A stretch of DNA of 20,151 bases, from assembly GCA_977017575.1 (NCBI GenBank), contig CDRNVI010000214.1, positions 1 through 20,151 on the forward strand, in the 5' to 3' direction. Positions 2,893 to 20,151 of the stretch are shown one piece after another. This DNA is from Paramoeba atlantica. Its lineage: Eukaryota > Protista > Discosea. Made by a program: the position numbers and the translations under genes. The notes beneath the pieces are model-generated. The model saw nothing but the letters and a program-made list of their open reading frames with translations, did no database searches and was not told the DNA's origin. The stretch's first letter is position 1. Each line of letters begins with the position of its first letter.

Positions 2893-4539
2893 TCACTTGG
2901 AGAAAACAAAGTTACCCGACATATTAAAAGATTGAGAAGGAGGAGCCCCGAAAGAAAAGAAATTGTTTGGTTGTTGTGGAGCAAGTGCTGTCGCGGGTTG
3001 TTGTTGTGGTTGTTGTTCAAAGACATTCTCATCCTCTCCTTCAAAGTACTCCTCCAAAAGTTTGGAAGCAATCTCGTGAATCTTCAATTGGGAATGGTTT
3101 TGGAGCTCTTCAATCGCCTCAAGTCCCCCATTCGATTCCATCTCAAGAGCATAAGGATTTGTTTGGTTGGTCTTCGCATTCGCAAGAGTATCACCAACAC
3201 CCATAATCTTCTCAACAGCCTCAAGACAAATGATCAAAAGTTTGGTGTCTTTGTTCGACAAGAATTCAACGATAACCTTCAAACAACCGGCTTGGACCAT
3301 ACGAATGATTTGTTCACTTGTTCCACCGGAGATCGCATTGGTCACTGCCCAAGCAGCTTCTTTTCGAATTTCAAACTCACCCTCCGAACAAAGGGCAATC
3401 AAACGAGAAAGAAACTCGCCGTTCATAATCGCATCAATTTGGGGGGTTGTTCCAGCAGTCACATTCGAAAGAGCCCAGACACATTCTTTGAGCATATTAC
3501 GGTTTGTTTGAGTGTCCATGATGTGTTCAATCGCTTCAAGACCACCGAGGTCGATCACAGCTTGAGTCTGATATTGAGTTCCGGTGACAAGATTTCCGAC
3601 AGTTCGAAGAGCAGGGGTCAAAACAGATGTATTGTCAAGGTAAAGCAAATCAATTAATCGGGGAACAAGACCTTCTTCAATCACAGCTTGCAATTTGTGG
3701 TCTTCACCGTCAGTCAAGTAAGAGAGAGCCCAGCATGCATCACCAAGAACATCTTCATCATCAAGGTTCAACAATCGATAAAGAACACCCAAACATTTTT
3801 TGATACGTGTAAAGTTAGGGGCAGGTTTCCCACGAACCAAATTGGATAAAGTCCAAGTTCCATTGCAGAGGAAAGATTTGTTTGTTGTAGTTTGGAGATT
3901 GTGAAGAAGAGGTTCAAGCGCATTACAAGACAACACATAGTCACGACACTGACAAGAATCACCAGCAATATTTCCAAGAGCCCAAGTAGCTTGTTCTCGA
4001 TTCTCCAAACTCTCCGCATTGGCAGACATCGCGACAAAAGCGGGAACAGCACCAGCGTCAATCACACACTTGGTATGGTCCGAAGTTCCAGAAGCAATGT
4101 TTGTTAAAGCCCAAGCTGCCTCAAATTGGATATCCTTATGAGGAACGCCCAAAAGTTCGACAAATCGATGAACAATCCCACTCGCAATCACAATATCAAT
4201 TGGAGGTTTGGATTCACGAGAGAGGATCTTCCGAATTGATCGAACACCAACAAGAACTTCATTGGGATCAGAGGAACGACTGAGAGAGATAAAACGAGAA
4301 AGGTCAGCATCAGCCTCAGTGGACATCAAAAAAGCATCTTCAGCAGATCGAGGAGCCACAGATGTGGAGGAAGATTCCTCATCGAAAGTGATGTTTCGTC
4401 TCTTCAAAGCCAACTCTTCGCGTTTGTTCTTTCGGATTGAAGCGTGTTTGTCCTCCCTTCTTCGACGAGAATCGGTAACATCAATTCCTTTCTTGAACGC
4501 CTTCCTCCTCTCGTCTTGTTTTGCTCGAACAGACATCAT
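2893..4539 (-). CDS. KPNA: Importin subunit alpha (karyopherin alpha), single exon, about 548 aa
   Basis: N-terminal IBB domain (ERRKAFKKG..SRRRRED...IRKNKREE.ALKRRN) followed by ARM repeats (QFEAAWALTNIASG, EQATWALGNIAGD, DACWALSYLTDG, KECVWALSNVTAG, KEAAWAVTNAISGG) and an acidic/aromatic tail. The start is taken at ATG ATG 4539/4536 rather than the track's non-ATG start at 4575. Confidence 0.96.
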   Translation of the reverse strand: MMSVRAKQDERRKAFKKGIDVTDSRRRREDKHASIRKNKREELALKRRNITFDEESSSTSVAPRSAEDAFLMSTEADADLSRFISLSRSSDPNEVLVGVRSIRKILSRESKPPIDIVIASGIVHRFVELLGVPHKDIQFEAAWALTNIASGTSDHTKCVIDAGAVPAFVAMSANAESLENREQATWALGNIAGDSCQCRDYVLSCNALEPLLHNLQTTTNKSFLCNGTWTLSNLVRGKPAPNFTRIKKCLGVLYRLLNLDDEDVLGDACWALSYLTDGEDHKLQAVIEEGLVPRLIDLLYLDNTSVLTPALRTVGNLVTGTQYQTQAVIDLGGLEAIEHIMDTQTNRNMLKECVWALSNVTAGTTPQIDAIMNGEFLSRLIALCSEGEFEIRKEAAWAVTNAISGGTSEQIIRMVQAGCLKVIVEFLSNKDTKLLIICLEAVEKIMGVGDTLANAKTNQTNPYALEMESNGGLEAIEELQNHSQLKIHEIASKLLEEYFEGEDENVFEQQPQQQPATALAPQQPNNFFSFGAPPSQSFNMSGNFVFSK

Positions 4540-4899
4540 TTTTAATACTTCTAACTTCGAAATCGACTGGTTCAAAAAAAAGTTTTCTGGTTTTTTTGTA
4601 AGAAAAGTTCACAACAAAAAGAAAAAGTGAAAATGTTGTTTTTTTTGAAAAAGACGTTTTTGGGCAAAAGTAACGGCCAGTCGCCCCACGGAAAGGAATT
4701 AATATCTCAAAGTATCAAAAAAAAGTTTTTTAACTGTATAGTTTTTGAACACTCTTCAAATTCAAATTTCAGTTTTTTAGACCTAAAAATCATACTTTCG
4801 ACTTTTCTTTCTAAAACACACCTCACCGCTTTCAAAAAAACACAAACCACCAACAAACAACAACATCAACTCTTCTTTCTATCCTTTCTCTCGAAAAAG
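4540..4899. promoter_or_regulatory. Probable bidirectional promoter between importin-alpha and bL20m
   Basis: The two starts diverge across 360 nt. A GC-richer island (GTAACGGCCAGTCGCCCCACGGAAAGG, about 4669-4697) sits inside AT-rich sequence. Function is inferred from geometry only. Confidence 0.45.
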
Positions 4900-5626
4900 A
4901 TGAACAAACAAAAAGTCTTTGAGTTAGCCAAAGGTTTTCGTGGGAGAAGTAAGAATTGTTGGGTTCTCTCTCGAAATCGTGTTGAAAAAGCACTTCAACA
5001 TCAATACAGGTGATGTTTCTGTGTGATTTGTGATTTGTGTGGAATTTTTTCTTTTTTTTTTCTTCACCCAATTTTTGATTCCCTTTGAAGAGGTCGACGA
5101 TTGAAAAAGAGGGTGATGAGAAGTACTTGGATTCAACAAATCAATGCTGCAACTCGACAGGTTTTTTTTTCTTTTTGTCTTCATCTTTTCTTCATCTTTC
5201 GTTTTGAAACGAGAGTCAGTCCCAATTTTTCTGAGAATCGAGAACAATTGACAAAACTGAATTTTTTTTCTTGGAAAAAGGCAGGAATCCCTTATTCTCA
5301 CTTTATGAGAGATCTATCTCAGACTGAGATTCATCTTGATCGGAGATCTCTTGCGGAACTTGCAAGTTTGTCTTTTTTTTTATGTGTTTCGAGAGAATTG
5401 GAGAAGAGAAGAAGATTTTTTTTTTAAAATCATTCACAAAGAAGAATTTTCATTAAGTCCTATTTTATTCATCGACCAATATTCTTTTTTTTGAAACACA
5501 GTGTCAGAACCATACTCCTTTCGGGCTGTCCTTGACACTGTTCTTGAAATGAAAGAAAATCAAGGAAGTCCCCTTTCTGAATCTCAAGATATTTTTGCTG
5601 CTTCAAGAGTTGTGACATCATCTTAA
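4900..5626 (+). CDS. MRPL20: Mitochondrial ribosomal protein bL20m, 129 aa
   Basis: Exons 4900-5009, 5091-5160, 5281-5365 and 5502-5626 give MNKQKVFELAKGFRGRSKNCW...VEKALQHQYRGRRLKKRVMRSTWIQQINAATRQAGIPYSHFMRDLSQTEIHLDRRSLAELAMSEPYSFRAV..., which follows the bL20 pattern (AKGxRG, YRxRxxKKR..R..WI..INAA, LDR+xLAELA..EP.SF). Confidence 0.93.
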
Positions 5627-6132
5627 AAACTATATTTTTCTGTTTTTTGTTTTTGTTTTTCACAAGAAAAAAGAAACAAAAACGTGTATTTTTCTGTTCT
5701 CATTTTTTTAAAATGAGGAATCACCATCTTATTTTTATATGCCAATCTCCCCAATCCACCCATCATCACATATATTCGAAAAACCACCATCATCTTTTCA
5801 AATAAAAATAGAGGACACAAAGTACAAGCGGGATGAATTCAGAGGTTTTTTGGAGTTTTTTCTTTTTCCTTTTGTTGGTTTTGGATTTTGTTAGTGTTCA
5901 TTTTTGAAAAAGAAACAAATATTTTAATTGAAACAACTTTTTGAGACATCAAACTGAAAAAACAAGGTCACAATTCAGACAAATGGATCCACAAAAAACA
6001 CAAAAGAAGAGGATTGTTTTTTGAAACAAAAATTGTTTTTCTTCATTTTGCACACAAAAAAAACGGGTACAATTCTTTTTTCAAAGAGGAAACAAAAACT
6101 TGTGAAATAACCAAAGTCGTTTGTGTGGATGA

Positions 6133-6483
6133 ATGGAGAATGAGGTATCTATTTTGAGGTTTCTCCTGTTTTCTTTCTTTTTAACTCAACTTTTTTTCAA
6201 GATTTTCGAAAACCCAAAGAGAGAAGAAGAAGAAGAAGAAGAGGGGAGCAGCTCTTTTTCTTCAGAGGAAGAAACCTTTGACGGAAGTCCGAAAGAAGAA
6301 CTCGTTGTGAAAAATGAGGAATATCTCTTGGAAGGTGAACAAGCAACTGGTTTATGGGATGAAATTACAGACAAAGGAGCGAGGATTCTATTCTACTTGA
6401 TCGTTTGTCTCTTTCTTCTTGGGGTGATTCTCTTGTTTGCTGCTTTGTTTCATGATTTGGATATTTTGTCGGTGTTTTTCTAG
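6133..6483 (+). CDS. Small single-pass membrane protein with acidic N-terminus (possible extra 3' exon 6596-6895)
   Basis: Exon 6133-6144 (MENE), a 57-nt GT-AG intron, then exon 6202-6483 with a poly-E/S region and a hydrophobic segment ILFYLIVCLFLLGVILLFAALF. An alternative donor at 6472 and acceptor at 6595 would add 99 aa in frame. Confidence 0.6.
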   Translation: MENEVSILRFLLFSFFLTQLFFKIFENPKREEEEEEEGSSSFSSEEETFDGSPKEELVVKNEEYLLEGEQATGLWDEITDKGARILFYLIVCLFLLGVILLFAALFHDLDILSVFF

Positions 6484-6541
6484 CAAGAAAACCTCGAGAG
6501 GGGAGCCGCTTTTTGTTTTGCTTTGATTACAAAAAGGAGAC

Positions 6542-6565
6542 AATCGCACATGACCCTGTGCGATT
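6542..6565. other. Perfect 9-bp inverted repeat (hairpin) with 6-nt loop
   Basis: AATCGCACA-TGACCC-TGTGCGATT. Confidence 0.6.
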
Positions 6566-7096
6566 CAATTCAATAACGCTCTTTGGGCTTTTCAGGAAGG
6601 TGATTTGGGAACTGTAAATCAAACCGAAAATCGTTCTTCGTTTTTGGCACCCCACATCTCTTTGAAAAGGAAACAGAATTCTTTTCACCAACAACTTGTG
6701 GAGTTGGAGTCTCAAGAAAATACGTGTTGGGTCCTTGGACAAAAAAGGATTCATTCAAGGGGGAACTTTCGACTCACCCAAAAGTGTGGTGCGAGGACCT
6801 TTTTTGAAACCATTTTCCCAAACCAAAAGAACATCTTTCTTGTTTTTGAAGGTGTGAAATCCTCATCAAGACATAAAAATATTTATTCCTCCTAAAAATT
6901 TGAAGAAAATAAAATTTGTTCCTCCCAAAAAGCAAAGCGAACCAAACACCGAAACGATTTTGCTTTTGCTTTTTCCCTTTTTCCCTCTTTTTCCCTCTTT
7001 TTTCCCTCTTTCCTTTTTTCCTTTTTCCCTTTTTGTGTTGGTGTGTTGAGGTGAGGTGACAGAAGAGTGGTGTGGTTCTCAGAGGGTGTGGTGGTG

Positions 7097-8299
7097 ATGA
7101 AGATCAATTATCGTCCCCCAAACCCCCTTTCCCTTGTTGTTTGCTTTCTTCTTCTTTTCTGGATCTCTTTTCTCTTTTCTCCGGTTTCCTCTTCCATATC
7201 TTTTGTTCCTAATGTGATGAACTTTTCTCTTCTTGCCTTTGAGAGTGGAGAAAGGGGTTTTGTCGTTGAAAGAACCTATCAAAGAAAAAAATTTCCTCGT
7301 TTGGCTGTGTTCTTGTTTCATACAACCTCAAGTTTGGAACTTGCTTCGATTCAATTCTCAGCTCTGGTTGATGCTCTTCAAAAAGGCAAAGTGGACTTAT
7401 CTGATGTTTCGATTGAGATTTGGGTTCAGACTAACCGTGAAAGAGAAGCTGTTGAGAAGACTTTGAATTTATCAACATCGAAAATGATGAGACCTCCTCC
7501 TCCTCAGACATTCATCACAACATACCCTCCTTCCGACACTGTTCATCCATCGGAAAGACATGCTGACATCGTAAACTCAGCTTTCCAACGCCGAGGGGGT
7601 TCTTATCTTCTCAACAATACTGCTGTTCTTTTGTTGGATGGTGATATGATCCCAATTTCTCCTTTATCTTTCTCAAATTTATATCTTGGAGACTATCCTA
7701 TCACTTGTTCCAGCAAAAGCACATACTCTCAGGCGCCCGTCCAGCAGCGATATTTTTGTTGGGTTGGATGGATATTGCTGTTCCCAGAACTTGATGAAAC
7801 GATCATCAAAAATTTCTCTGTTTCGACAGGGACAGGTGGAGATACTGGATATGAAACTCTGCAAGTGACTGATATTGTGGGGTTGAATTGGATGAGAAAG
7901 ACTCGCATTCCTCCTAAAATTCGATTTGTCGACGGTGTTCTTGACCAAGACATTAAGTGGATTTCAAAGAAGTCGAAATATGCTCACAAATGTTATTTTG
8001 GTCAAATTTACTCGGTTGGAGATTCACACTTTTATCATATGGGATCTGCAGCTTCAACATGGAAGTTTTCACAAATTTCAATGCGATACAAAGATCTGCA
8101 AGAAAAATTGAATGACAAGAGAATTTCACAGTTTATAATTGATGACATGAAGACAGTTTCTAGTTTGGCTCCAGAGTTACTTGGTTATCCTTATGGACCT
8201 TGTAATCACAAATTTTGTTGTGAAGTGAATGACAAAAAATCACTTAAGATTCAAAGAAAAAAAACTGATTCTGCTGACTCAGAAAAAACCTTGAATTAA
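7097..8299 (+). CDS. Type II membrane protein, putative GT-A fold glycosyltransferase, single exon, 400 aa
   Basis: ATG at 7097; N-terminal hydrophobic anchor (LSLVVCFLLLFWISFLF); beta-strand + DXD motif (VLLLDGDMIPI); later GGDTG and FYHMGS motifs as expected for a nucleotide-sugar-binding GT-A fold. Family not assignable. Confidence 0.65.
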   Translation: MKINYRPPNPLSLVVCFLLLFWISFLFSPVSSSISFVPNVMNFSLLAFESGERGFVVERTYQRKKFPRLAVFLFHTTSSLELASIQFSALVDALQKGKVDLSDVSIEIWVQTNREREAVEKTLNLSTSKMMRPPPPQTFITTYPPSDTVHPSERHADIVNSAFQRRGGSYLLNNTAVLLLDGDMIPISPLSFSNLYLGDYPITCSSKSTYSQAPVQQRYFCWVGWILLFPELDETIIKNFSVSTGTGGDTGYETLQVTDIVGLNWMRKTRIPPKIRFVDGVLDQDIKWISKKSKYAHKCYFGQIYSVGDSHFYHMGSAASTWKFSQISMRYKDLQEKLNDKRISQFIIDDMKTVSSLAPELLGYPYGPCNHKFCCEVNDKKSLKIQRKKTDSADSEKTLN

Positions 8300-8465
8300 A
8301 AAATATTAGGATGTTGGTTTATTTATTTTAAAAGAATGGAGATTGGTTTTTCTTTTGAATTTCTCATTTTTTGTTTTGAGAGAGAATTAAAGAAAAGTGT
8401 GAGAAAAGCCTTTTCAATAATAACACACTTTCAATTTTTTTTTCATCTCCCTTTTTTTTTTCTCT

Positions 8466-9424
8466 TCAATGTTTTGCAGGTTTGAACATTACACCACCCC
8501 CACCTTTTGTTCTCATAATGGCTTGATGACCACCACAAGCAAAACAGACCGCTGGATATAATATTTGTGAAATGTCTTCTTCACTTAATTCAAAGGCGAC
8601 TCCTCGGTCAACTCCATCGTCCAAAAAATGAATTGTTCTGAGAAAAGAGAAGAGAAAGACAAGAACCAAGAGAGAAAAAAACAAGAAAAAAAAGAAATAG
8701 CTGCTCAATTGACAGGGGTTGATCAAGAGAATAAAAAACAGAATGGACCTTGTTTTTGCAAAATATTTCATTTGTACAACATGCATCTTTGGGGAAACTA
8801 GAAAAATCCAAAAAATTTTTTTAAAGAAAACTAAAATTACTGAGAAAGAAAAGAAAGAAGAAAAAAGAAAACTTTCTTTCCATGGCAGGGAAAATGGAAT
8901 TGATTTATCTTTGTGGTTCACATTCCCATTAATATTCCAACCCCAAGAGGTGTATGTTGATCCCAAAAGAAAAGGAGAGCCATTTTCTTGAAATTAATTA
9001 AAATGAAAAGGGAGAATAAAAGAGAAGAGAAGAGAAGAAGAGAAGAGAAGAGAAGAGAAGAGAAAAAGAGAAATCACTGTGAAGGGGTTGATCGGAAAGA
9101 CCAATGGAATAAGCTGTTCGAAAAATTTGGCTGTTGATGCGAACAACAAATTCGATCTCAAAATCTGAAAAGAAATCAAGGGGTTCTTTTCCAATTGCAA
9201 TTTTTGTATGTGCCTAAAAAAAGAGAAGAAAAAGATAATGATTTGTGATTTGAAACAAGAAGAGAGGAAGGAAAAAAAAAAGAAGGAAAACTTTGAAACA
9301 TACGCACCTGATGAAACTCAATTTTTTTATCATCTTCAGCCAAAGTAAAGTAGTTTTTAAATTGTTGCCATTGAAGGCAGTCAGAATCTACTTTCCACTT
9401 TTCAGGGACAAGGAAATTGGCCAT
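8466..9424 (-). CDS. SPRY/B30.2-domain protein, 195 aa
   Basis: Exons 9424-9308, 9213-9078, 8986-8873, 8797-8749 and 8637-8466 splice in frame. Typical SPRY elements: YSIGLS, LLGSTYTSWGWNING, FSLPW, TIHFLDDGVDRGVAF, LYPAVCF. Confidence 0.8.
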
Positions 9425-9598
9425 CTGGAACCTATCAAAAAATTTGAAAAAAAAAAACAACAAAGAGGACACCATGAAAAGGAAGGGACACCGTTCTCTT
9501 TTTCTTTTTTCACTTTTTGTTGAACGAAGAGAGAAGAAAGGAAAAAAGAAAAAGAGATACAAAGAAGAGAGACGAAGAAGAGACAAAGAAAAAAGAAG

Positions 9599-11434
9599 AT
9601 GGAAGAAGAAGAAGAAACTCCAAATGAAGAAACAAAGAAACTATTTGATGGTGTCGAAAAGGGAGATGAAGAACTTGTCAAAGTTCTTCTTGGAAAAGAA
9701 AACAAACAATTCAAACTTGATCTCAACTTCCAATCCAAAGACAAGGTTTTTTTTTTCTTCAAAGCCTTTCTCTCTTCTCTTTTCTTTTTTCCCCTCTCCT
9801 CTTTGTTCTCCTTTCTCCTCTCTTGTTTACCTTTTTTTAAAACTTCTTTTTGGCAAGTGGGGATGGACTGCTCTTCACTTGGCTGCTCAGAAAGGTTTTG
9901 AAGAAATTGTGAAGATTCTTCTTGAACATGGATCCAATGTTGATCTTCAAAATAATGTTTTGATTTTCATTTTTTTTCTTCCCATTTTTATTTGTTGTTG
10001 TTAATTCTTTTGGTTGTTCCTGTTTTGATGAGTTGTGTGATATTTATTTTATTTTTTTCTTTTTTAACAATTTTAATTTGTTAAGTATGAAGAGACCGCT
10101 CTTCACTTAGCTGCTAAGCATGGTTTCAAAGAAGTTGTAACAATTCTTCTTGAACATGGATCCAATATGCATCATCGAGAAAGAGTTTTGATTTTTTTTT
10201 TTTTCATTTTTTATTTGTTGTGGTTCATTCTTGGTTGTTCCTGTTTTGATGTGATATTTATTTTGTTTTGATCTTTTTTGAACAATTTCAATTTGTTTCA
10301 GTGGGGAGAGGCTGCTCTTCATTTAGCCACGAAAAAAGGTTTTGAAGAAATTGTGAAGATTCTCATTGAACATGGATCCAATGTTGATCTTCAAACCAAT
10401 GTTTTGATTTTTCTTTGTTTTCTTTGTTGTGGTTAATTCTTAGTTGTTCATGTTGTTTTGGTGGTTGTGATAATTTATTTTGTTCTTTTTTAACAACTTC
10501 TTTTTGTTAAGAATGGCTGGATCGCTCTTCACTTTGCTGCTTTAACTGGAAAAGAAGAAATTGTGAAGTTTCTTCTTGAACATGGATCCAATGTTGATCT
10601 TCAAAGCATGGTTTGAACAATCTTTTTTTGTTTTCTCATTTTGATTTGTTGTGATTCATTCTTGGTTGTTCATGTTGGTTGTTGATGTGTTGTGTGATAT
10701 TGATTTTATTATTTTTTTAACAATTTCTTTTTGTTCAGTGGGGAGAGACCGCTCTTCACATGGCTGCTCAGCGTGGTTTCAAAGAAATTGTAACAATTCT
10801 TCTTGAACAGGGATGCAATATTTATCTTCAAGATACAGTTTTGATTTTTTTCTTTTCTCATTTTTATTTGTTATGGTTCATTCTTGGTTGTTCATGTTGG
10901 TTGTTGATGTGTTTGTGTGTGATGTTTTATTTTATTTTGTTCTTTTTTTAACAACTTCTTTTTGTTCAGAAAGGCTGGACTGCTCTTCACTTTGCTGCTG
11001 AAAATGATTTTGAAGAAATTGTAAAGATTCTTCTTGAACATGGACCCAATGTTCATCTTCAAACTAAAGTTTTGATTTTCTCTTTTTTTGAGTAAAATAA
11101 CAAAACTGTTGATTGTTCTTTATTATGTTTGGGGAGGGAGTTGTGGAATGGTTCTTTTTTTTTTTTGATCTTTCTTTTTTGTTAGAAAGGGAAAATAGCT
11201 TTAGATGTTGCAAAAGATGAAAGAATTGTTCAACTGATCACCACATTTCAAGAAAGGGTTTTGATTTCTTTTTTCTTTTTCTTTTTACCATATTTTTCTC
11301 CTTTTTCTTTTTCCATTTTTCATTTTTCAGATTTTTTTTAAATTTGGTACATTTTTTTTTGTTTGTATTTTCTTTTTTTGTTTGTACAGGGCAAAAATAT
11401 CAAACCAGCGGTTCAAAAAAAAAATGAAAACTGA
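9599..11434 (+). CDS. Ankyrin-repeat protein ANK-A (N-cap + 6 repeats + C-cap + tail), 285 aa
   Basis: Exons 9599-9745, six 99-nt exons (9858-9956, 10086-10184, 10302-10400, 10512-10610, 10739-10837, 10970-11068), 11186-11257 and 11390-11434. All introns are phase 0. The repeats read xGxTALHxAAxxGxxEIVxILLEHGxNVxLQ. Confidence 0.93.
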
Positions 11435-11960
11435 ACACTCTGAGTTGGTTGAGAGAAAAAGAAAATATTTCAATTTCTTTTTTCATCTCCGTTTTTCATT
11501 TGTTTGTGATTTTTTGTGTTGTGAATAACACACAACATACAAGAAATTGACACTCTTTTCATTCTTTGAGTTTTCTCTGATCATGTTTAAAAACTTTATT
11601 TCTGAGAGAAACTTTTAATTGTTTTTTTATTGTTGATCCACAAATGAAAACGACAATTAAATCTTTTTCTCTTTCCTTTTCTTCTCTCTTTTTCATTCAA
11701 AAAAAGAACAGCTGATTGCCAAAATTCAAAGGAAATTTTATTTTCAGACAATCTGACCTGAACTCCAACTTGTTTCTTCACCCTCTTCTTCTTCTTCTCT
11801 CTTTTCTCCTTGTTGTTCTCCTTTTTGTTCTTCTTGTTTTGTTCTTTTTGTTCTGGTTGTTGTGGAATGATTCTGTTTTTATGTTTGTTGTGAACTTCTC
11901 CTTCCTCTCTCCCTCCCCTACAACAATTCTATTCTATTCTCTTCTCAAATTCTCAAAACT

Positions 11961-12198
11961 TCAATTTTCTTTTATTCTTTGAGCTGGTTTGATTGTTTGT
12001 CCCTGCAAACCAAAGAAAAAACAATATGAGATTTCATTCTTTTCTACAATTCACAAAGATTCAACTCCAACAAAAAAAAATGGAAAAAAATGAAAAGAAG
12101 AAAAAGAAAATTAAAAAAAAGAAATGAAACCTTCAATATTGGATGATCAGTTCAACAACGTTCTGATTTTTTGCAACATCAAGAACTGTTTCACCCTC
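11961..12198 (-). pseudogene. Orphan 3' fragment of an ankyrin gene (C-cap exon + tail exon only)
   Basis: Exon 12198-12131 (EGETVLDVAKNQNVVELIIQY*) is 68 nt versus 66 nt in ANK-B/C; the 2-nt insertion creates TGA. Exon 12002-11961 reads GQTIKPAQKNKEN*. Upstream intron homology stops near 12275 and no 5' exons of its own are present. Confidence 0.8.
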
Positions 12199-12438
12199 CT
12201 AACAAAAAAAGAAAGTTAAAAAAAAAAAAGAAGCACTCCACACTCTCCCCCAAATAACAAAATAACAATCAATGATTTTGCAAAGAGTTGTTTTTCCCTC
12301 AGTTTCACAGTTTTTCAAGTTTTTTCGATTTTGTTCCTTCTTATTTTCAATTGAAAAATTTGTTCAATCTTGGTTCCTCAAAAATCTCAAAAAAAAAAAA
12401 TAGAATTGAAGAGAGAAGAAAAAAAGAAAGTCCTCTTT

Positions 12439-13269
12439 TTAATTTTCTTTTTTTATTTGAGCTGGTTTGATTGTTCGTCCCTACAAACCAAAAAGAAAAA
12501 CAACATGAGAATTGAAAGAAAAAATGCCAAAAAAAGAAGAGAGAGAAAAAAATGAAACCTTCAATTGGATGATGGATTCAACAATGCTCTGATCTTTTGC
12601 AACATCAAGGACTGTTTCACCAGCCTAATAAGAAAAAGAAAGAAAAGAAAGTATAAGAACCACTCCAACCCCATCCTTCTCCTCAATTCTCCCAATTTCC
12701 CCACCCTCCCACAATCCAACAAGTCAATAAATCAAAAAAAGAAAATCAAAACTTCATTTTGAAGATGAATACTGGCTCCATGTTCAATCAGAATCTCCAC
12801 AATTTCTTTTGAACCTTTCTTAGCAGCAAAGTGAAGAGCGGTCCATCCTTCCTTAACAAAAAGAAGTTGTTAAAAGAATAAAACAAAATAACTCTCACAC
12901 AACTCTCTTTCAAAAAAAAATAAAAATCAAATCAAAACTTTATCTTGAAGATCAACATTGGGTCCATGTCCAACAAGAATCTTCACAATTCCTTCTTTTC
13001 CAGTGAAAGCAGCAAAGTGAAGGACAGTCCATCCAAACTTAACAAAAAGAAGTTTGAGAAAAAAGGGGGAGAGAGAAAGATAAAAAAAAGGAAAAGAGAG
13101 AAAAAAGGTTCCAAAAAAAAACCATCTTTTTGAATTGAAAGTTGAGATCAAGTTTGAATTGTTTGTTTTCTTTGCCAAGAAGAACTTTGACAAGTTCTTC
13201 ATCTCCTTGAAGAATAGCATCAAATAGTTTCTTTGATTCTTCATTTGGAGTTTCTTCTTCTTCTTCCAT
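12439..13269 (-). CDS. Ankyrin-repeat protein ANK-B (N-cap + 2 repeats + C-cap + tail), 150 aa
   Basis: Exons 13269-13123, 13037-12939, 12851-12753, 12624-12559 and 12480-12439; all phase 0; open frame ending GRTIKPAQIKKEN*. Confidence 0.9.
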
Positions 13270-13542
13270 CTTCTTTTTGTGTGTGTGTTTTTGTGATGGT
13301 TCACGCGACAAACTTTTGAAAAAGAGAAAAAAGGAAAAGGATTCATTTTGGTCAGAACTTTTCCTCTTTATTTTCGAGTGAAGGAAGGGGAGTTGGTATT
13401 TCCCTTTTAACAGTTTTTCAAGTTAGTTTTTTGATTTTATTTCTTCTTATTTTCAATTGAAAAATTTGTTCAATCTTGGTTCCTCAAAAATCTCAAAAAA
13501 AAAATAGAATTGAAGAGAGAAGAAAAAAAGAAAGTCCTCTTT

Positions 13543-15482
13543 TTAATTTTCTTTTTTTATTTGAGCTGGTTTGATTGTTCGTCCCTACAAACCAAAAAGA
13601 AAAAAAATATGAGATCATTCTAGACTCAATTAATATTCAACAAAAAAAACTTAAAAAGAAAATTGAGAATTGAAAGAAAAAGAGAAAAAATGTTAAAAAA
13701 AGAAGAGAAAAAAAATGAAACCTTCAATTGGGTGATGAATTCAACAATGCTCTGACTTTTTGCAACATCAAGGACTGTTTCACCAGCCTAATAAAAGAAA
13801 GAAAAGAAAGTATAAGAACCACTCCAACCCCATCCTTCTCCTCAATTCTCCCAATTTCCCCATCCTCCCACAATCCAACAAGTCAATAAATCAAAAAAAG
13901 AAAATCAAAACTTCATTTTGAAGATGAATACTGGCTCCATGTTCAATCAGAATCTCCACAATTTCTTTCGAACCTTTCTTAGCAGCAAAGTGAAGAGCGG
14001 TATCTCCATACTTAACAAAAAGAAGTTGTTAAAAGAATAAATAAAATCTCACACTAAAAATGAGGAAATCAAAACTTTAGTTTGAAGATGAATACTGGCT
14101 CCATGTTCAATCAGAATCTCCACAATTTCTTTCGAACCTTTCTTAGCAGCAAAGTGAAGAGCGGTATCTCTATACTTAACAAAAAGAAGTTGTTAAAAGA
14201 ATAAATAAAATCTCACACTAAAAATGAGGAAATCAAAACTTCATCTTGAAGATCAACATTGGATCCATGTTCAATCAGAATCTCCACAATTTCTTTCGAA
14301 CCTTTCTTAGCAGCAAAGTGAAGAGCGGTATCTCCATACTTAACAAAAAGAAGTTGTTAAAAGAATAAATAAAATCTCACACTAAAAATGAGGAAATCAA
14401 AACTTCATTTTGAAGATGAATACTGGCTCCATGTTCAATCAGAATCTCCACAATTTCTTTCGAACCTTTCTTAGCAGCAAAGTGAAGAGCGGTATCTCTA
14501 TGCTTAACAAAAAGAAGTTGTTAAAAGAATAAATAAAATCTCACACTAAAAATGAGGAAATCAAAACTTCATTTCGAAGATGAATACTGGCTCCATGTTC
14601 AATCAGAATCTCCACAATTTCTTTCGAACCTTTCTTAGCAGCAAAGTGAAGAGCGGTCTCTCCATACTTAACAAAAAGAAGTTGTTAAAAGAATAAAACA
14701 AAATCTCACACTAAAAATGAGGAAATCAAAACTTTAGTTTGAAGATGAATACTGGCTCCATGTTCAATCAGAATCTTCACAGCTTCTTCAAAACCTTTCT
14801 CAGCAGCACAGTGAAGAGCGGTCCAGCCATCCTTAACAAAAAGAAGTTGTTCAAAAAGAAAAAAACAAAATCTCACACAAACACATCAGAATAAACAAAA
14901 AAAACAACCAAGAATGAACAACAACGAAAACAAAATCAAAAAAAAAGGAAATCAAAACTTTAGTTGGAAGATCAACAAAGGATCCACATTCAAGAAGAAT
15001 CTTCATAATTTCTTGAAAATCTTGGTTCGCAGCACAGTGAAGAGCGGTCCAGCCATCCTTAACAAAAAGAAGTTGTTAAAAGAATAAAACAAAATAACTC
15101 TCACACAACTCTCTTTCAAAAAAAAAATAAAAATCAAATCAAAACTTTATCTTGAAGATCAACATTGGGTCCATGTCCAACAAGAATCTTCACAATTCCT
15201 TCTTTTCCAGTGAAAGCAGCCAAGTGAAGAACAGTCCATCCAAACTTAACAAAAAGAAGTTTGAGAAAAAAGGGGGAGAGAGAAAGATAAAAAAAAGGAA
15301 AAGAGAGAAGAAAAAAGGTTCCAAAAAAAAACCATCTTTTTGAATTGAAAGTTGAGATCAAGTTTGAATTGTTTGTTTTCTTTTCCAAGAAGAAGAACTT
15401 CAACAAGTGCTTCATCTCCCTTCTCTACACCATCAAATAGTTTCTTTGTTTCTTCATTTGGAGTTTCTTCTTCTTCTTCCAT
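13543..15482 (-). CDS. Ankyrin-repeat protein ANK-C (N-cap + 8 repeats + C-cap + tail), 349 aa
   Basis: Exons 15482-15333, eight 99-nt exons (15244-15146, 15057-14959, 14831-14733, 14666-14568, 14502-14404, 14338-14240, 14174-14076, 14010-13912), 13787-13722 and 13584-13543; all phase 0; open frame. Confidence 0.92.
13912..14732 (-). repeat. Five tandem 164-bp units (99-nt ankyrin exon + 65-nt intron)
   Basis: Exon starts at 14010, 14174, 14338, 14502 and 14666 (period 164). Four introns are identical; the fifth is 66 nt with 1-2 changes. Confidence 0.97.
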
Positions 15483-15771
15483 CTTCTTTTGTGTGTTTTT
15501 GCGGTGGTTCAAGCGACAAACTTTTGAAAACGAGAAAAAAGGATGCCAGAAAAAGGATTGATTTGGTCGGGACTTTTTCCTTTGATTTTCGAGTGAAGGA
15601 AGGGTTTGAAAAAATGTCCTTGTTTTTTGTTTTTCTCTTTCGGAAGGACACTTTTTCTCTCTTTTGAAATCTCTCTTCAACAAATTTGGTCTTTCAAAAA
15701 AGATTTACCTTCTTCTTTCTTCTCTCTTCTCTTCTTGAAAGCATCACAAAAAAACACACACAAAATCAGAG

Positions 15772-15813
15772 ATGGAAGGAGAAGAAACTTCAACTTCCAA
15801 GACGGAAGACAAG
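15772..15813 (+). pseudogene. Internally deleted copy of the ankyrin-family exon 1 (MEGEETSTSKTEDK) with its donor site
   Basis: ATGGAAGGAGAAGAAACT joined to TCAACTTCCAAGACGGAAGACAAG|GTTTTTTTTTCTTCAAAACCTTTCTCT matches both ends of ANK-A exon 1 and the start of its intron 1, with about 105 nt missing. No ankyrin exons follow. Confidence 0.75.
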
Positions 15814-15835
15814 GTTTTTTTTTCTTCAAAACCTT

Positions 15836-15880
15836 TCTCTCTCTCTCTCTCTTTTCTCTCTCTTTCTCTCTCTCTCTCTC
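15836..15880. repeat. (CT)n microsatellite
   Basis: Interrupted CT dinucleotide run. Confidence 0.85.
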
Positions 15881-16265
15881 ATAATCAACAACATCCAAGC
15901 AATCTTGTATAATGTTTGTTATGCAAATAGTCTTTTGAAACCGTTGCACAGGGTGAGCAAGAAATACCAAAACTTTGAGTTTAAGACAAACAAAGAGTTT
16001 TTACCCCAGGTGGTTGATTTTCTTTCTGTGGCAACAGCCAATCTCTTTTTTATGATGTCAGCAAAATTTGGGGTGTTTTTGTTTGAGATTTCTCTGGATT
16101 TGTTATGCTTTTCTCAGAGATATTTTGAGATTTCCCAAAATGATCTCAAATCTCTTGACTTCTTGAGAAAGAAAGATTTCTTGAGAAATAAAGATTTCTT
16201 TGAACTATCTTTTATTGTGTGACACAGAGAGGAGATTTTTTCATTTTTTAAAATCCTTGTTTGCA

Positions 16266-16551
16266 ATGGATCCAGTTCGATCATCTGAGAGAATGAGAGA
16301 AGAAGAAGAAGAAAGAAGAGAAAAAAGAAGAGAAAAAAGAAGAGAAAAAAGAAGAGAAAAAAGAAGAGAAAAAAGAAGAGAAAAAAGAAGAGAAAAAAGG
16401 AACCCTTAAAAGAAAACGAACTGCCTCTCAGGCACCTGACCCCCCCCAACCTGTCCTGTCACCAGAACCAGACAGCCCTCTCCATGTTGACCATTGTGAA
16501 ACAACTGATGATGATGATGACATCTGCATGGTGGCAGAAATTCTGCCCTGA
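16266..16551 (+). pseudogene. Possible frameshifted small ORF (MDPVRSSERMREEEEE / KEEKKEE...GTLKRKRTASQAPDPPQP...DDDDDICMVAEILP*)
   Basis: The ATG-16266 frame stops at 16409. The +1 frame is open from 16297 to 16551 and reads like a disordered protein with a KRKR basic patch, but has no start of its own. Confidence 0.3.
16312..16392 (+). repeat. 12-nt minisatellite (AAAAAAGAAGAG) x6 plus a partial unit
   Basis: Exact units from 16321 to 16392; they encode KKEE or REKR depending on frame. Confidence 0.95.
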
Positions 16552-17988
16552 ATTCCACCCCGAATTCCTCCAAACCCATCACCTCCATGAAAAAGAACCT
16601 GTTTTTTGGAAGCTGGGAATGCGATGCTCTTCTCCACTTTCTCCTCTCTTGTGAAAAAGAAAGAGAAGCCAAAAAAAGAGATGTGGTCACGAATTTGATT
16701 GGTTATTTGGGGGTGTGAAAATGATCAATTAACCTTTTTTTCAATTTTAAATTTTCAATAAAAAATTCTGTTTGTGGATTTTTCAAAAAAGTTGGTGAGA
16801 ATAAAATCAACTGGAATGAAACCTGAGCTTGTGATGAACAGTTTTTGTGGATCTGTAAATTGGGGGTAAGGGAGGTGTGGAATTTGGATCAGTTTCTTGA
16901 ACTTTGTGAGAAATGATTATAAACTTCCTCATGATAGGGGATTATAATTTTTGTCAAGATCATTGATTCCTCAAGGCCAAATAAACTGGGAAAACAGAGA
17001 ATGATTTATTATTGTGAAGAGATTGCTTTGTGACAACCCTCACAATAAGATGACTGCATTGTTGGTTCAGTGTAAGTTCAGTGAAGATGTGAATGTCAAA
17101 AAGGAATGTATGCATTGTTCATCATATGGAATATTCAGTGAATTGTCAGACTTCAATGCTTCCCCCTATTCCTGTGATTGAACAATGTGTTCAGAGTCAC
17201 ACATACAGAAGGATAATTTCATGTCTTTATCCAGCTAAGAGATGCCATCTGTTCAGAAATGGACTTATAACTTTCCTGCCTTTGTTTCCTGCACTGGGTC
17301 AATGCCTTTATGCACTCTATTGTTTATGAATTCAAAGAAAAGAGAAGCCATCAGTTTCATCATATGTTTCATTGTATGCTTCTTGTATAAGATTCATCAT
17401 TTCATTCTCAGTTTCAGGTTCTTCTTTTTGTTTTTCTTGTTTGTCTTCTGCAAAACCCTTTCTAAAAGCTTTGTCAATCCTTTTTTGAATTGTTTCTTCC
17501 ATTTGGGCTCTCCAGGGTGCATCATGATTAGAAAGATGGAAACCAAGCTTTTCATCAGCTCATTGAATACTGCATTTGAATCAAGAGTGTTCTAATTTAC
17601 AATAATATTGGCAAATATGTTTGTTGAGTTTGTTTCAATTTTTCCCACCAATTCAAAGAATAGAGTCAGAAGGTTGAGAGAAGGAGGATGAAAATCATTT
17701 GGTGAGTTTTCTTGCATTTGTGATATTGTATTGTTTATTTACAATCAAATTTTAACAAACACCTTCAAGGGAATTAGGGAAAGCTTTGAGGAGATGAAGG
17801 AAACAAATGTTGTTGTCTTGGGGCAGTTCAATAGCACAAAGGCAGTTTACAAGAAATCAAAGTGAATGAGAAATGATCCTACATCTTCACCTCCTTTGTG
17901 TTAAAATTAATAAACTTTTCATTAAGATCAAGTTGGTTAGAAAGTGTGTTTCAATTAAACTTGATTTGTATGTGGTTTCAATGTCAGA

Positions 17989-18640
17989 TTGTGAAAGTGT
18001 TTCAACTTTTGAAGATGCTTCTTGATTTGGTGTTGTTTTGTTGTTTCCTCTATATTTTTCTAATTAAAGAGTGTTTTGTTTTGTTCAAATTTGTGTTTCA
18101 TCATAAGCTTGGTTTGTATTGCTTTTGTTGTACTTTGAGCAGAAGTTGTAGAAATCATAGTAAATTTAGGAGATTTAAACTGAACTGTTTTTTGGTTCCC
18201 TTTGTATTAATAGTAGAGATGCACCACTCTATACTTTTTTTTTGAAAGTTTGCTTTGCTTCTATGTTTTGATTCTTTTTCCATTTATTTTTAGTTGTACA
18301 TTAGCTGTGAGTAATGATATTTCTATGTTGCTTTATTTTCAAGAGGAAATGTTTTGGTTAGGTCTTCTTATAAGGATGTGGGAAGATGTGAGGGAAAGAG
18401 ACTTTAATTATATTTTTTCTTGAGTAATGTTTTTCCTATTATTTTCCTTAAATTTGTACTATGAGATTTTTTATTTTCAGAAGAAAACAGAAAATAGTTA
18501 TTGTTGAATGAATTTTCTACTTGATGTGAGTGTTGGAAGATCTTGTTTAGAAAATAGTAGTGTAGGTAGGTGTTAGGTTGTGAAAGTATTTTAACTTTTG
18601 AAGATGTTTCTTGATTTGGTATTGTTTTGTTGTTTCCTCT
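17989..18640. repeat. Dispersed 63-bp direct repeat (17989-18051 and 18578-18640)
   Basis: TTGTGAAAGT.TTT.AACTTTTGAAGATG.TTCTTGATTTGGT.TTGTTTTGTTGTTTCCTCT; four mismatches, all transitions. Confidence 0.9.
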
Positions 18641-18970
18641 GTGTTTCCCTTGTAAAATGATAGATTTTACAGTGAATAATAAAAGCAATTAAAATGTTGT
18701 TGTGCAATTTGAGAATTTGAAAAATGAACATTGGACTGTTTCAGAAATTGGTGGTTCCACATCAGCACTCATTTTCCTTTATTTAATAAATCAAAAAAAT
18801 ATAAATGTCTTTATCAAGGAGTTGTTGATTTCTCTGTTGCATCCTCCCACATGGTACAAGCAGCAAAGTTGATAGTTGCTGTTGTTCAAAAGTTGCTTCA
18901 ACTTTTCATCAACCCTTATCCTTTTAAAACAACACAAAAACAATGCAATTCTTTTTGTTAAAAAGAAAAA

Positions 18971-19088
18971 ACTTTTTTTGAGACTTTGATGACTAAATAA
19001 TAAGAGTTATTTTGAAGTTGTTGAAAAAAACTTTTTTTGAGATTTTGATGACTAGATAATAAGAGTTGTTTTGAAGTTGTCAAAAAAA
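18971..19088. repeat. Telomere-adjacent tandem duplication, 59-bp period, two copies
   Basis: ACTTTTTTTGAGA.TTTGATGACTA.ATAATAAGAGTT.TTTTGAAGTTGT at 18971 and 19030; five mismatches, all transitions. Confidence 0.92.
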
Positions 19089-19212
19089 AGAAAATTGATT
19101 TTTAATTCATTCCAAAATTCTTTTTTTTATTTTTTCCATTGCTTTCTCTTCTTCTTTTTTCCCTGCCACTTCTAATCTCAGGAGGAAGACAATCAACTTT
19201 TCAATTTCTCTC

Positions 19213-20151
19213 TTAGGGTTTAGGGTTTAGGGTTTAGGGTTTAGGGTTTAGGGTTTAGGGTTTAGGGTTTAGGGTTTAGGGTTTAGGGTTTAGGGTTTAG
19301 GGTTTAGGGTTTAGGGTTTAGGGTTTAGGGTTTAGGGTTTAGGGTTTAGGGTTTAGGGTTTAGGGTTTAGGGTTTAGGGTTTAGGGTTTAGGGTTTAGGG
19401 TTTAGGGTTTAGGGTTTAGGGTTTAGGGTTTAGGGTTTAGGGTTTAGGGTTTAGGGTTTAGGGTTTAGGGTTTAGGGTTTAGGGTTTAGGGTTTAGGGTT
19501 TAGGGTTTAGGGTTTAGGGTTTAGGGTTTAGGGTTTAGGGTTTAGGGTTTAGGGTTTAGGGTTTAGGGTTTAGGGTTTAGGGTTTAGGGTTTAGGGTTTA
19601 GGGTTTAGGGTTTAGGGTTTAGGGTTTAGGGTTTAGGGTTTAGGGTTTAGGGTTTAGGGTTTAGGGTTTAGGGTTTAGGGTTTAGGGTTTAGGGTTTAGG
19701 GTTTAGGGTTTAGGGTTTAGGGTTTAGGGTTTAGGGTTTAGGGTTTAGGGTTTAGGGTTTAGGGTTTAGGGTTTAGGGTTTAGGGTTTAGGGTTTAGGGT
19801 TTAGGGTTTAGGGTTTAGGGTTTAGGGTTTAGGGTTTAGGGTTTAGGGTTTAGGGTTTAGGGTTTAGGGTTTAGGGTTTAGGGTTTAGGGTTTAGGGTTT
19901 AGGGTTTAGGGTTTAGGGTTTAGGGTTTAGGGTTTAGGGTTTAGGGTTTAGGGTTTAGGGTTTAGGGTTTAGGGTTTAGGGTTTAGGGTTTAGGGTTTAG
20001 GGTTTAGGGTTTAGGGTTTAGGGTTTAGGGTTTAGGGTTTAGGGTTTAGGGTTTAGGGTTTAGGGTTTAGGGTTTAGGGTTTTAGGGTTTAGGGTTTAGG
20101 GTTTAGGGTTTAGGGTTTAGGGTTTAGGGTTTAGGGTTTTTAGGGTTTAGG
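19213..20151 (+). repeat. Telomeric array (TTTAGGG)n, about 134 units, G-rich strand running towards the end
   Basis: Uninterrupted TTTAGGG heptamers to the window end. Only two T-length variants occur (near 20080 and 20140). The orientation is that of a right chromosome end. Confidence 0.99.

Follow-up and report, generated by a model that had tools for sequence, protein, structure and literature searches.

Exon-intron cassettes and a variable surface in a family of putative ankyrin-repeat binders from Paramoeba atlantica

Three genes in a stretch of 20,151 nucleotides from the poorly studied protist Paramoeba atlantica (contig CDRNVI010000214.1, referred to below as the window) carry ankyrin repeats with one repeat per exon. 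The locus raises the question of whether this arrangement is a dedicated system for generating diversity in recognition, as a preliminary description had suggested, or a familiar way of building repeat proteins. The analysis presented here indicates that the family is a vivid case of a known building mode for repeat proteins and not a new diversity machine. It is probably a fast-evolving, lineage-specific germline family of putative binders, built from cassettes.

Genes A, B and C share a common plan: an N-cap exon opens the gene, exons of exactly 99 nt follow (6, 2 and 8, respectively), and a C-cap exon and then a short tail exon close it, with all introns being GT..AG and phase 0. Gene A (9599-11434, forward strand), with AG/GT and phase 0 at every boundary, comprises an N-cap exon (9599-9745), six 99-nt ankyrin exons (9858-9956, 10086-10184, 10302-10400, 10512-10610, 10739-10837 and 10970-11068), a C-cap exon (11186-11257) and a tail exon with a TGA stop (11390-11434), giving a spliced product of 285 aa. 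Gene B (13269-12439, reverse strand; about 150 aa) has its N-cap at 13269-13123, two 99-nt ankyrin exons at 13037-12939 and 12851-12753, the C-cap at 12624-12559 and the tail at 12480-12439. Gene C (15482-13543, reverse strand; about 349 aa) begins with an N-cap exon at 15482-15333, continues through eight 99-nt ankyrin exons (15244-15146, 15057-14959, 14831-14733, 14666-14568, 14502-14404, 14338-14240, 14174-14076 and 14010-13912) and ends with the C-cap at 13787-13722 and the tail at 13584-13543. Each of the 16 repeats in the window (16/16) is thus a 99-nt AG..GT exon in phase 0.

These maps bear out the three-gene architecture of the preliminary description, whose lists of hairpin and helix-1 residues are correct. 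Its statement that the reading frame survives whichever repeat exons are combined also holds, because the 99-nt exons are symmetric and in phase 0. The homology that it had noted between the introns flanking the repeats is found as conserved intron ends across the family: on the donor side GTTTT[G/C]ATTT is shared by 71 of the 95 introns, and the acceptor ends read ..TTTTTGTTAAAG or CTTTTTGTTAAG. Two details have to be amended. A naive reading of the N-cap exon ends in genes B and C is one codon too short (..FKKM followed by GT; the exons measure 147 and 150 nt), and the tails, described as 14-15 codons long, have 13-14 codons plus the stop, the tail exon itself being confirmed.

Regarding the identity of the repeats, exon residues 1-33 fall on positions 1-33 of the Pfam Ank profile (PF00023), with 32.3-45.7 bits in the five exons tested (gathering threshold, 21.1 bits). 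Little or no variation is seen at T4, L6, H7, A9, V18, L21 and G25, and the repeats are stacked in tandem, 2-15 to an array, with the T-x-L-H motif. The internal repeats are flanked by dedicated N- and C-capping repeats conserved family-wide. As judged from profile alignments with hhalign, these caps correspond to shortened ankyrin repeats that keep the register of the internal ones, N-cap residues 14-33 aligning to repeat positions 5-24 (45% identity) and C-cap residues 1-18 to positions 1-21, although the E values are weak (2.5e-4 and 4.8e-4). The N-terminus is acidic and constant. The tail is basic and conserved (G-R/K-T/N-I-K-P-A..KKEN), its motif G-R/K-T/N-IKPA being constant in all 20 tails that were recovered. 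For the N-cap and first repeat of paralogue L005, a single-sequence AlphaFold2 model shows helices as expected, at a mean pLDDT of 66, too low a confidence to count. The predicted proteins consist of a constant acidic N-terminus with an N-capping half-repeat, 2-15 consensus-like 33-residue repeats, and a constant C-capping half-repeat with a conserved basic tail. They are small, ankyrin-repeat-only and probably intracellular, the one indication of that location being the acidic N-terminus, which is unlike a signal peptide.

The growth of these genes can be followed in gene C, which contains a young tandem array (13902-14878, reverse strand) of about six 164-bp modules, each made of a 99-nt exon and a 65-nt intron, covering repeats C4-C8 (TRF: period 164, 5.9 copies, 94% matches). 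The modules are 97-98% identical and their introns are identical save for one indel, while the exons have 11 variable sites, 11/11 of them non-synonymous. Several of these differences are blocks copied from other repeat types, for example C6 codons 26-32 and C7 codons 32-33. The contig L002, from another sample and 98.5-99% identical to the window, has exactly one 164-bp unit fewer; the resulting difference (7 vs 8 repeats) comes from two assemblies, with the array not spanned by reads. The L002 haplotype is real, because its SNPs at 11002, 11387 and 11652 recur in runs X2 and X3, being absent from X1. DNA-run contigs were considered as an array-spanning check and discarded as too short, the joints listed in them being repeat collapses and not biology. 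Gene B, for its part, looks like a gene C that has lost an internal stretch without a change of frame, through recombination between C2 and C8: its intron 2 equals the intron upstream of C2 (87/87 identical), its intron 3 matches the intron downstream of C8 at 123 of 124 positions, and exon B2 is C8 from codon 4 on.

Cassettes turn over in the germline, and the exon with its short intron is the unit that is gained, lost and recombined there by unequal crossover or gene conversion. The preliminary description had already named exon plus intron as the unit of amplification and had proposed comparing repeat number between strains or clones. The 164-bp array, the one-unit indel between haplotypes and the derivation of gene B from a C-like gene by recombination and deletion support the former, and a comparison between samples gives 8 vs 7.

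This mode of construction has precedents. In the scheme of Street, Rose and Barrick (2006, J Mol Biol 360:258), as summarised in PMC4585158, all exons of class 2 genes have lengths that are multiples of the repeat; the introns keep one position and phase from repeat to repeat, and the genes arose as intron/exon modules were duplicated locally. The family agrees with them in having one ankyrin repeat per symmetric 99-nt exon, introns at the same point per repeat, homologous intron ends, and local duplication, seen here as 164-bp modules with a one-module indel. It differs from them in that the duplications are very recent, with modules 97-98% identical and one-module polymorphism between samples. 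The membrane-binding domains of vertebrate ANK1/2/3 are an example of class 2, each within one large and ancient scaffold protein, unlike the tiny ankyrin-only products of this protist multigene family. The growth of a repeat protein by exon-intron duplication is thus caught in the act, through identical introns, the presence or absence of a single module, and a sister gene arising from recombination of two repeat exons, for a mechanism otherwise mostly inferred from ancient genes.

If the cassettes explain how the genes grow, the distribution of substitutions bears on what their products do. Changes were counted in 41 independent nearest-neighbour exon pairs, with the face defined a priori by the positions of designed ankyrin repeat proteins (DARPins), the dN/dS units being 33 codons that recombine and convert. 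With the caveats of recombination and saturation, the face gives an omega of 2.76 (CI 2.2-3.5, global dS) or 1.95 (CI 1.34-3.19, own dS), versus 0.73-0.77 outside it, as expected of diversifying selection on a ligand-contact surface. In the packing core (L6, H7, A9, V18 and L21), pN is 0-0.04 vs a pS of 0.13. Positions 2, 3, 5, 13 and 14 are hypervariable (pN/pS 2.1-3.5), with aromatic and charged residues enriched at the hypervariable positions. Statistically, and with the same caveats, hairpin and helix-1 surface codons outpace synonymous sites, in contrast to a conserved helix-packing core; the claim that variation concentrates on the canonical binding face therefore stands, with dN/dS above 1 there.

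The most serious competitor, although an unlikely one, is neutral birth-and-death with concerted evolution. The family would then be an ordinary expanding one without adaptive diversification, and the elevated omega would result from a scaffold made uniform by gene conversion, with dS lowered, from mosaic exon edges and from saturation. Four hypervariable codons border the exon ends; mosaic conversion may exaggerate divergence there, and site-level pS is raised. Whole-exon omega is ~0.9, and the differences within the young array are partly copied blocks, as described above. In addition, maximum-likelihood codon models with 6- or 7-codon face partitions are unstable and saturated (omega 25 and 3.6, the 6-codon partition reaching omega 25 at a tree length of 108). 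From these models only the direction (omega above 1) was used, together with the likelihood ratio test, which gives 49 for the face codons relative to omega=1; the main reliance was on the pairwise counts. Intron divergence was dropped as a neutral yardstick because T-rich family introns align at ~84% even between non-partners. Against the neutral explanation, the face omega of 1.95 is measured relative to synonymous changes in the same codons, with 0/2000 bootstrap replicates <=1, and the helix-1 central positions 8, 11 and 12 are elevated as much as the edge positions. Moreover, strong constraint acts on the core, and caps and tail alike are conserved; the genes are therefore under selection and not drifting.

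Taking into account the variable surface, the conserved core and the constant termini, the likely function of the germline family is that of a binder repertoire, made up of putative stoichiometric binders with differing specificities and identical N- and C-terminal handles. DARPins, reportedly developed by Binz, Kohl and Pluckthun in 2003-2004, show a comparable design of consensus-like repeats between N- and C-caps, with variability at the hairpin and helix-1 surface. The family departs from them in that position 33 is conserved and nearly fixed as Q (pN/pS 0.44), positions 1 and 10 vary too (2.1 and 2.8), and the proteins have in addition a conserved acidic N-terminus and a basic tail encoded by its own exon; being natural, it is no member of a synthetic DARPin library. 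The overlap with DARPin positions that had been pointed out holds at 2, 3, 5, 13 and 14, but since library positions were picked for their variability in natural ankyrin repeats, the argument is partly circular and the overlap largely expected.

Another comparison is with the small ankyrin-only regulators INK4/p16, IkB, myotrophin/V-1, NRARP and gankyrin, which are single conserved genes of fixed repeat number. Like them (2-8 repeats), the family has ankyrin repeats as sole domain, a presumably cytosolic or nuclear location and probably stoichiometric binding through the concave face; unlike them, it is expanding, clustered and polymorphic, with fast-evolving contact residues. The combination of constant scaffold and termini with contact residues apparently under positive selection, in ~20 or more paralogues, provides a tractable candidate binder repertoire, whose invariant tail is a concrete handle on what the putative binders plug into.

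The extent of the family was estimated from the 10 other contigs that could be fetched (L001 and L003-L011). Their N-r(n)-C units amount to at least ~20 genes, each carrying 2-15 repeats, and among 113 repeat matches in the family, 95 are intact 99-nt AG..GT phase-0 exons. An hmmsearch with the N-cap against 1.84 billion representatives gave 58 matches at E<=0.001, ~30 of which cover most of the N-cap, and 11 of 11 matches looked up came from one ENA assembly. A homology search with the P0009 N-cap for spliced, transcript-derived family proteins gave nothing but ORF calls, unspliced and again from that assembly. The literature search for a prior description of such a protist family found none, returning general work on repeats and exons only.

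The preliminary description had called the family subtelomeric and had proposed looking for paralogues and mapping them relative to telomeres. Paralogues were found; their telomeric placement was not. The window does end in a (TTTAGGG)n tract of ~134 copies (19213-20151, forward strand), and therefore its cluster lies 3.7-9.6 kb from the chromosome end in this haplotype. However, the sister haplotype L002 runs on into unique sequence 2.7 kb beyond the point where the telomere starts in the window, and no telomere repeats were found at the 10 other family loci. On contigs of 36-58 kb, L003, L005, L006 and L007 are set in from the contig ends by 5.8-23 kb or more, and at least three of them (L003, L005 and L006) are well inside contigs of 43-58 kb. 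Thus, members are not mostly at chromosome ends, as those of a subtelomeric contingency family would be, and both the label and the suggestion of a special diversity mechanism call for correction.

In its strong form, such a mechanism would be a dedicated recognition system directed at viruses, symbionts or prey, with a repertoire multiplied in transcripts as exons are combinatorially skipped or shuffled, or else through programmed recombination at subtelomeres; this is quite unlikely. The in-frame symmetry of the phase-0 repeat exons, the binding-face omega above 1, the polymorphic copy number and the one cluster next to a telomere would all fit it, but many paralogues are internal to long contigs, and the symmetric exon=repeat layout is a known by-product of cassette duplication (PMC4585158). 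Combinatorial exon skipping also failed to appear in RNA: in a small run that carries the label 'RNA?' and whose assembled contigs are short, the sole junction is canonical, joining 11068 directly to 11186 in gene A, and none is skipped or shuffled. A second contig of the run covers gene C exon 14404-14501. Nothing points to somatic or transcript-level diversification.

Plant NLR LRR domains, lamprey VLR cassettes and subtelomeric contingency families such as var and VSG are fast-evolving germline recognition families made of repeat cassettes, with which this one shares a solenoid scaffold, hypervariable exposed positions, tandem clusters, copy number shifting through unequal recombination and the location of at least one cluster at the end of a chromosome. 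Unlike them, it has no signal peptide, membrane anchor, effector or signalling domain, many members are not subtelomeric, and there is no sign of somatic assembly or of mutually exclusive expression. It is quite unlikely that dozens of cytosolic 'natural DARPins', with binding faces under arms-race pressure from viruses, endosymbionts or prey, form an innate recognition repertoire, which would share a downstream machine through the C-cap and the G-R-T-I-K-P-A tail and multiply its diversity by in-frame cassette skipping or mitotic unequal exchange.

Finally, decay of the array into pseudogenes or subtelomeric duplication debris is very improbable. Fragments D and E are truncated, and D frame-broken, but genes A, B and C and their L002 counterparts keep frames and splice sites over up to 11 exons, most repeat exons are intact family-wide, core residues are under purifying selection, and a spliced RNA junction exists. 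These fragments are two remnants that the preliminary description had not separated. Fragment D (11961-12198, reverse strand) has no N-terminal part and consists of an orphan C-cap exon (12198-12136) and a tail exon (12002-11961), with a 2-nt insertion breaking the frame in the window copy. Fragment E (15772-15813, forward strand) has no ankyrin exons after it, no repeat match being found beyond 15482 in the window; it is a 14-codon N-cap exon remnant with a GT donor and intron start, head-to-head with gene C. An importin-alpha gene is a neighbour of the locus.

The best-supported reading of this locus is that of a germline family of many genes for small putative binder proteins with ankyrin repeats only, in which unequal exchange of cassettes (one 99-nt ankyrin exon plus its intron) turns over repeat number and composition, contact residues diversify under selection, and the scaffold and both termini are held constant. 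The eukaryotic DNA of the window is rich in AT (GC of about 0.30-0.35 across the locus), and exon maps of three intact genes were drawn from its translation and exon mapping. Gene A (9599-11434, forward strand) comprises exons of 147, 6 x 99, 72 and 45 nt; gene B (13269-12439, reverse strand), exons of 147, 2 x 99, 66 and 42 nt; and gene C (15482-13543, reverse strand), exons of 150, 8 x 99, 66 and 42 nt, encoding in each case an N-cap, the ankyrin repeats, a C-cap and a tail. AG and GT are present at all exon boundaries of these genes, and their introns, 65-137 nt in length, are all in phase 0. The 99-nt exons tested match the Pfam Ank profile over their full length (exon residues 1-33 against profile positions 1-33, 32-46 bits, cut-off 21.1), and therefore each corresponds to exactly one canonical repeat. 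The cut between repeat exons falls directly before the start x-G-x-T-A-L-H, a point which in established ankyrin structure is the hairpin between adjacent repeats. The cap exons gave no match in Pfam. Profile-profile comparison aligned N-cap residues 14-33 to repeat positions 5-24 (45% identity) and, with a gap of 3 residues, C-cap residues 1-18 to repeat positions 1-21. The two caps are thus shortened ankyrin repeats, such as commonly terminate natural arrays. Exon maps and Pfam matches bear out the architecture given for the intact genes in the preliminary description, save for details such as two remnants: D (12198-11961, reverse strand), a C-cap and tail whose frame is broken by a 2-nt insertion, and E (15772-15813, forward strand), an N-cap stub of 14 codons with its donor site kept.

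The proposal that exon plus intron is the unit of amplification is directly shown by gene C and by the recombinant origin of gene B. A 164-bp period, equivalent to a 99-nt exon and a 65-nt intron, was detected by TRF at 13902-14878 (5.9 copies, 94% matches), and this tandem array makes up repeats C4-C8 of gene C. Its introns are identical but for one indel, and its exons vary at 11 sites, all of them non-synonymous. In C6 (codons 26-32) and in C7 (codons 32-33), the differences form blocks matching other repeat types, which suggests conversion tracts and not separate point mutations. Gene B derives from a C-like gene by recombination: intron 2 of B is identical at 87/87 positions to the one upstream of C2, intron 3 at 123/124 to that downstream of C8, and the second repeat exon, B2, matches C8 from codon 4 on (one synonymous difference), with codons 1-3 of the C2/C3 type. 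The B2 junction is the footprint of an unequal exchange within the conserved T-A-L-H stretch, by which six cassettes were removed or added in frame.

A near-identical counterpart of the window, contig L002 (ENA assembly ERZ24900291), was reached via the N-cap profile search. It is collinear with window positions 5005-19214 at 98.5-98.9% identity, and its counterparts of genes A, B and C contain 6, 2 and 7 repeats, respectively. The alignment displays one clean 164-bp indel, and the adjoining units differ at codons 3, 32 and 33. The suggestion that repeat number might vary between samples is thus supported for gene C (8 versus 7 repeats), a count taken from two assemblies, since the array was spanned by no read or contig. 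The gene A SNPs that distinguish L002 from the window (11002, 11387 and 11652) are present in sequencing runs X2 and X3 and absent from X1; therefore, the two haplotypes come from separate samples of one organism, and the L002 version cannot be put down to a single assembly error. These three runs, which belong to one study, differ in haplotype (X1 carries that of the window, X2 that of L002, and X3 both alleles at 11002), and the culture or isolates are therefore genetically non-uniform.

Among the 16 repeats of the window, entropy is highest at exon positions 1, 33, 11, 32 and 12, followed by 26, 8, 14 and 3. The positions randomised in libraries of designed ankyrin repeat proteins (DARPins) are 2, 3, 5, 13, 14 and 33, which we take to be exon positions 33, 1, 3, 11, 12 and 31. 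With these six fixed before testing as the face positions, synonymous and non-synonymous changes were counted over independent nearest-neighbour exon pairs (95 distinct exons, 41 pairs). Omega at the face positions was 2.76 (CI 2.2-3.5) with family-wide dS and 1.95 (CI 1.34-3.19) with dS from the same codons, compared with 0.73 and 0.77, respectively, at the remaining 27 codons, values to be read taking into account that the units recombine, that four hot codons lie at exon edges and that conversion may homogenise synonymous sites. All 2000 bootstrap replicates of the face set gave values above 1, and the core residues L6, H7, A9, V18 and L21 had a pN of 0-0.04 versus a pS of 0.13. Hypervariability extends to exon positions 8 (DARPin 10) and 32 (DARPin 1), but not to position 31 (DARPin 33). 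In a codon model on a fixed tree, omega=1 was rejected both for the face codons (LRT 49, with omega above 1, in a saturated partition whose point estimate is meaningless) and for the rest (LRT 17, omega 0.62). The location of variation on the binding face, as originally noted, agrees with these ranges (1.95-2.76 versus 0.73-0.77), which support, but do not prove, that the canonical binding surface is under diversifying selection.

The termini are kept across paralogues. This applies to the N-cap and the acidic N-terminus, as well as to the C-cap, with consensus x-G-K-T-V-L-D-V-A-K-D-Q-x-I-V-E-L-I-I-Q-L-K. The last exon carries the nearly invariant motif G-R/K-T/N-I-K-P-A-(Q/R)..KKEN despite the differing faces of the paralogues, its G-R/K-T/N-I-K-P-A part being found in 20/20 recovered tails (window 11390-11434, 12439-12480 and 13543-13584; contigs L001, L003-L008 and L010). 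Such invariance suggests a shared partner or address, and the motif may be a docking or address peptide common to the family. A putative intracellular location is proposed because the acidic N-terminus is unlike a signal peptide.

Outside the window, the N-cap profile gave 58 matches among 1.84 billion representative proteins, about 30 of them covering most of the N-cap; the remainder were generic ankyrin proteins matched in the helical part alone. The full-length matches were unspliced ORF calls, and 11/11 looked up came from one ENA assembly, so the family appears lineage-specific. HMMs made from the window's exons revealed, on the fetched contigs, N-cap/repeats/C-cap units with 2 to 15 repeats, frequently in tandem clusters (two genes in L004, two in L010 and four in L007). 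Intact 99-nt exons flanked by AG and GT accounted for 95/113 repeat matches. Intron ends are conserved in the family, with the start GTTTT[G/C]ATTT present in 71/95 introns. The most conserved exon words reach a read depth 50-80x the single-copy level, in agreement with a large family. An exception to the cassette rule is L005:10001-10234, where the N-cap and first ankyrin repeat are joined in one exon, through intron loss or as an ancestral state. On ctg3805c (L008/L009, ENA, 31.6 kb, marked as circular by the assembler), one gene of the family occurs twice together with its neighbours; segmental duplication in tandem or an artefact of assembly may account for this.

The family had been regarded as subtelomeric, a view that the loci found beyond the window do not fit: those in L003, L005, L006 and L007 lie well within contigs of 36-58 kb, with neighbours such as PGK, a kinase and an EF-Tu-like GTPase, and telomere repeats were absent from all 10 other loci checked. 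In the window, about 134 copies of TTTAGGG extend from 19213 to its end, starting directly after ..TTCAATTTCTCTCTT, with a T microhomology of 2-3 nt at the junction. L002 runs on from the exact base at which this telomere starts into 2.7 kb of unique, telomere-free sequence (window 19200-19220 versus L002:2640-2720), and the window haplotype therefore appears truncated. Judging from this comparison, the event resembles a terminal deletion that was then healed, in a single haplotype or sample, through de novo addition of a telomere, and the subtelomeric position of the gene A-C cluster may be recent and haplotype-specific.

Small ankyrin-only proteins include INK4, IkB and myotrophin, and by analogy with them the products of this family would most likely work by binding other proteins stoichiometrically. 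That any subset of exons stays in frame, as the preliminary description stressed, is real, yet it is an automatic consequence of the origin of such genes. Street et al. 2006, as summarised in PMC4585158, already described genes with exons that are multiples of the repeat unit, originated by duplication of intron/exon modules, the same plan as in this family. Both the gene architecture and the pattern of variable face and fixed scaffold are already known for ankyrin genes; new are the family itself, the recency and polymorphism of its cassette duplications, an omega above 1 on the binding face and the conserved terminal handles. A stronger reading, in which these genes would form a natural immune-like repertoire, is considered improbable; no evidence was found of exon skipping, somatic recombination or dedicated diversification machinery, the RNA contigs being uninformative on isoforms. 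Two contigs from a run labelled 'RNA?' lend minimal support to transcription and the exon model: in one, 11068 is followed immediately by 11186, as predicted for the splice from the last repeat of gene A to its C-cap, and the other covers exon 14404-14501 of gene C.

Two further features of the window have to be mentioned. An uninterrupted importin-alpha ORF of 560 aa (2893-4575, reverse strand), with an IBB domain, 8 Arm repeats and an atypical Arm repeat, lies in otherwise intron-rich surroundings and could represent a retrocopy or a gene without introns. At 16300-16399, the purine-only 12-mer AAGAAGAGAAAA is repeated in 8.2 copies within a possible coding region, with an (EKRR)n-like reading.
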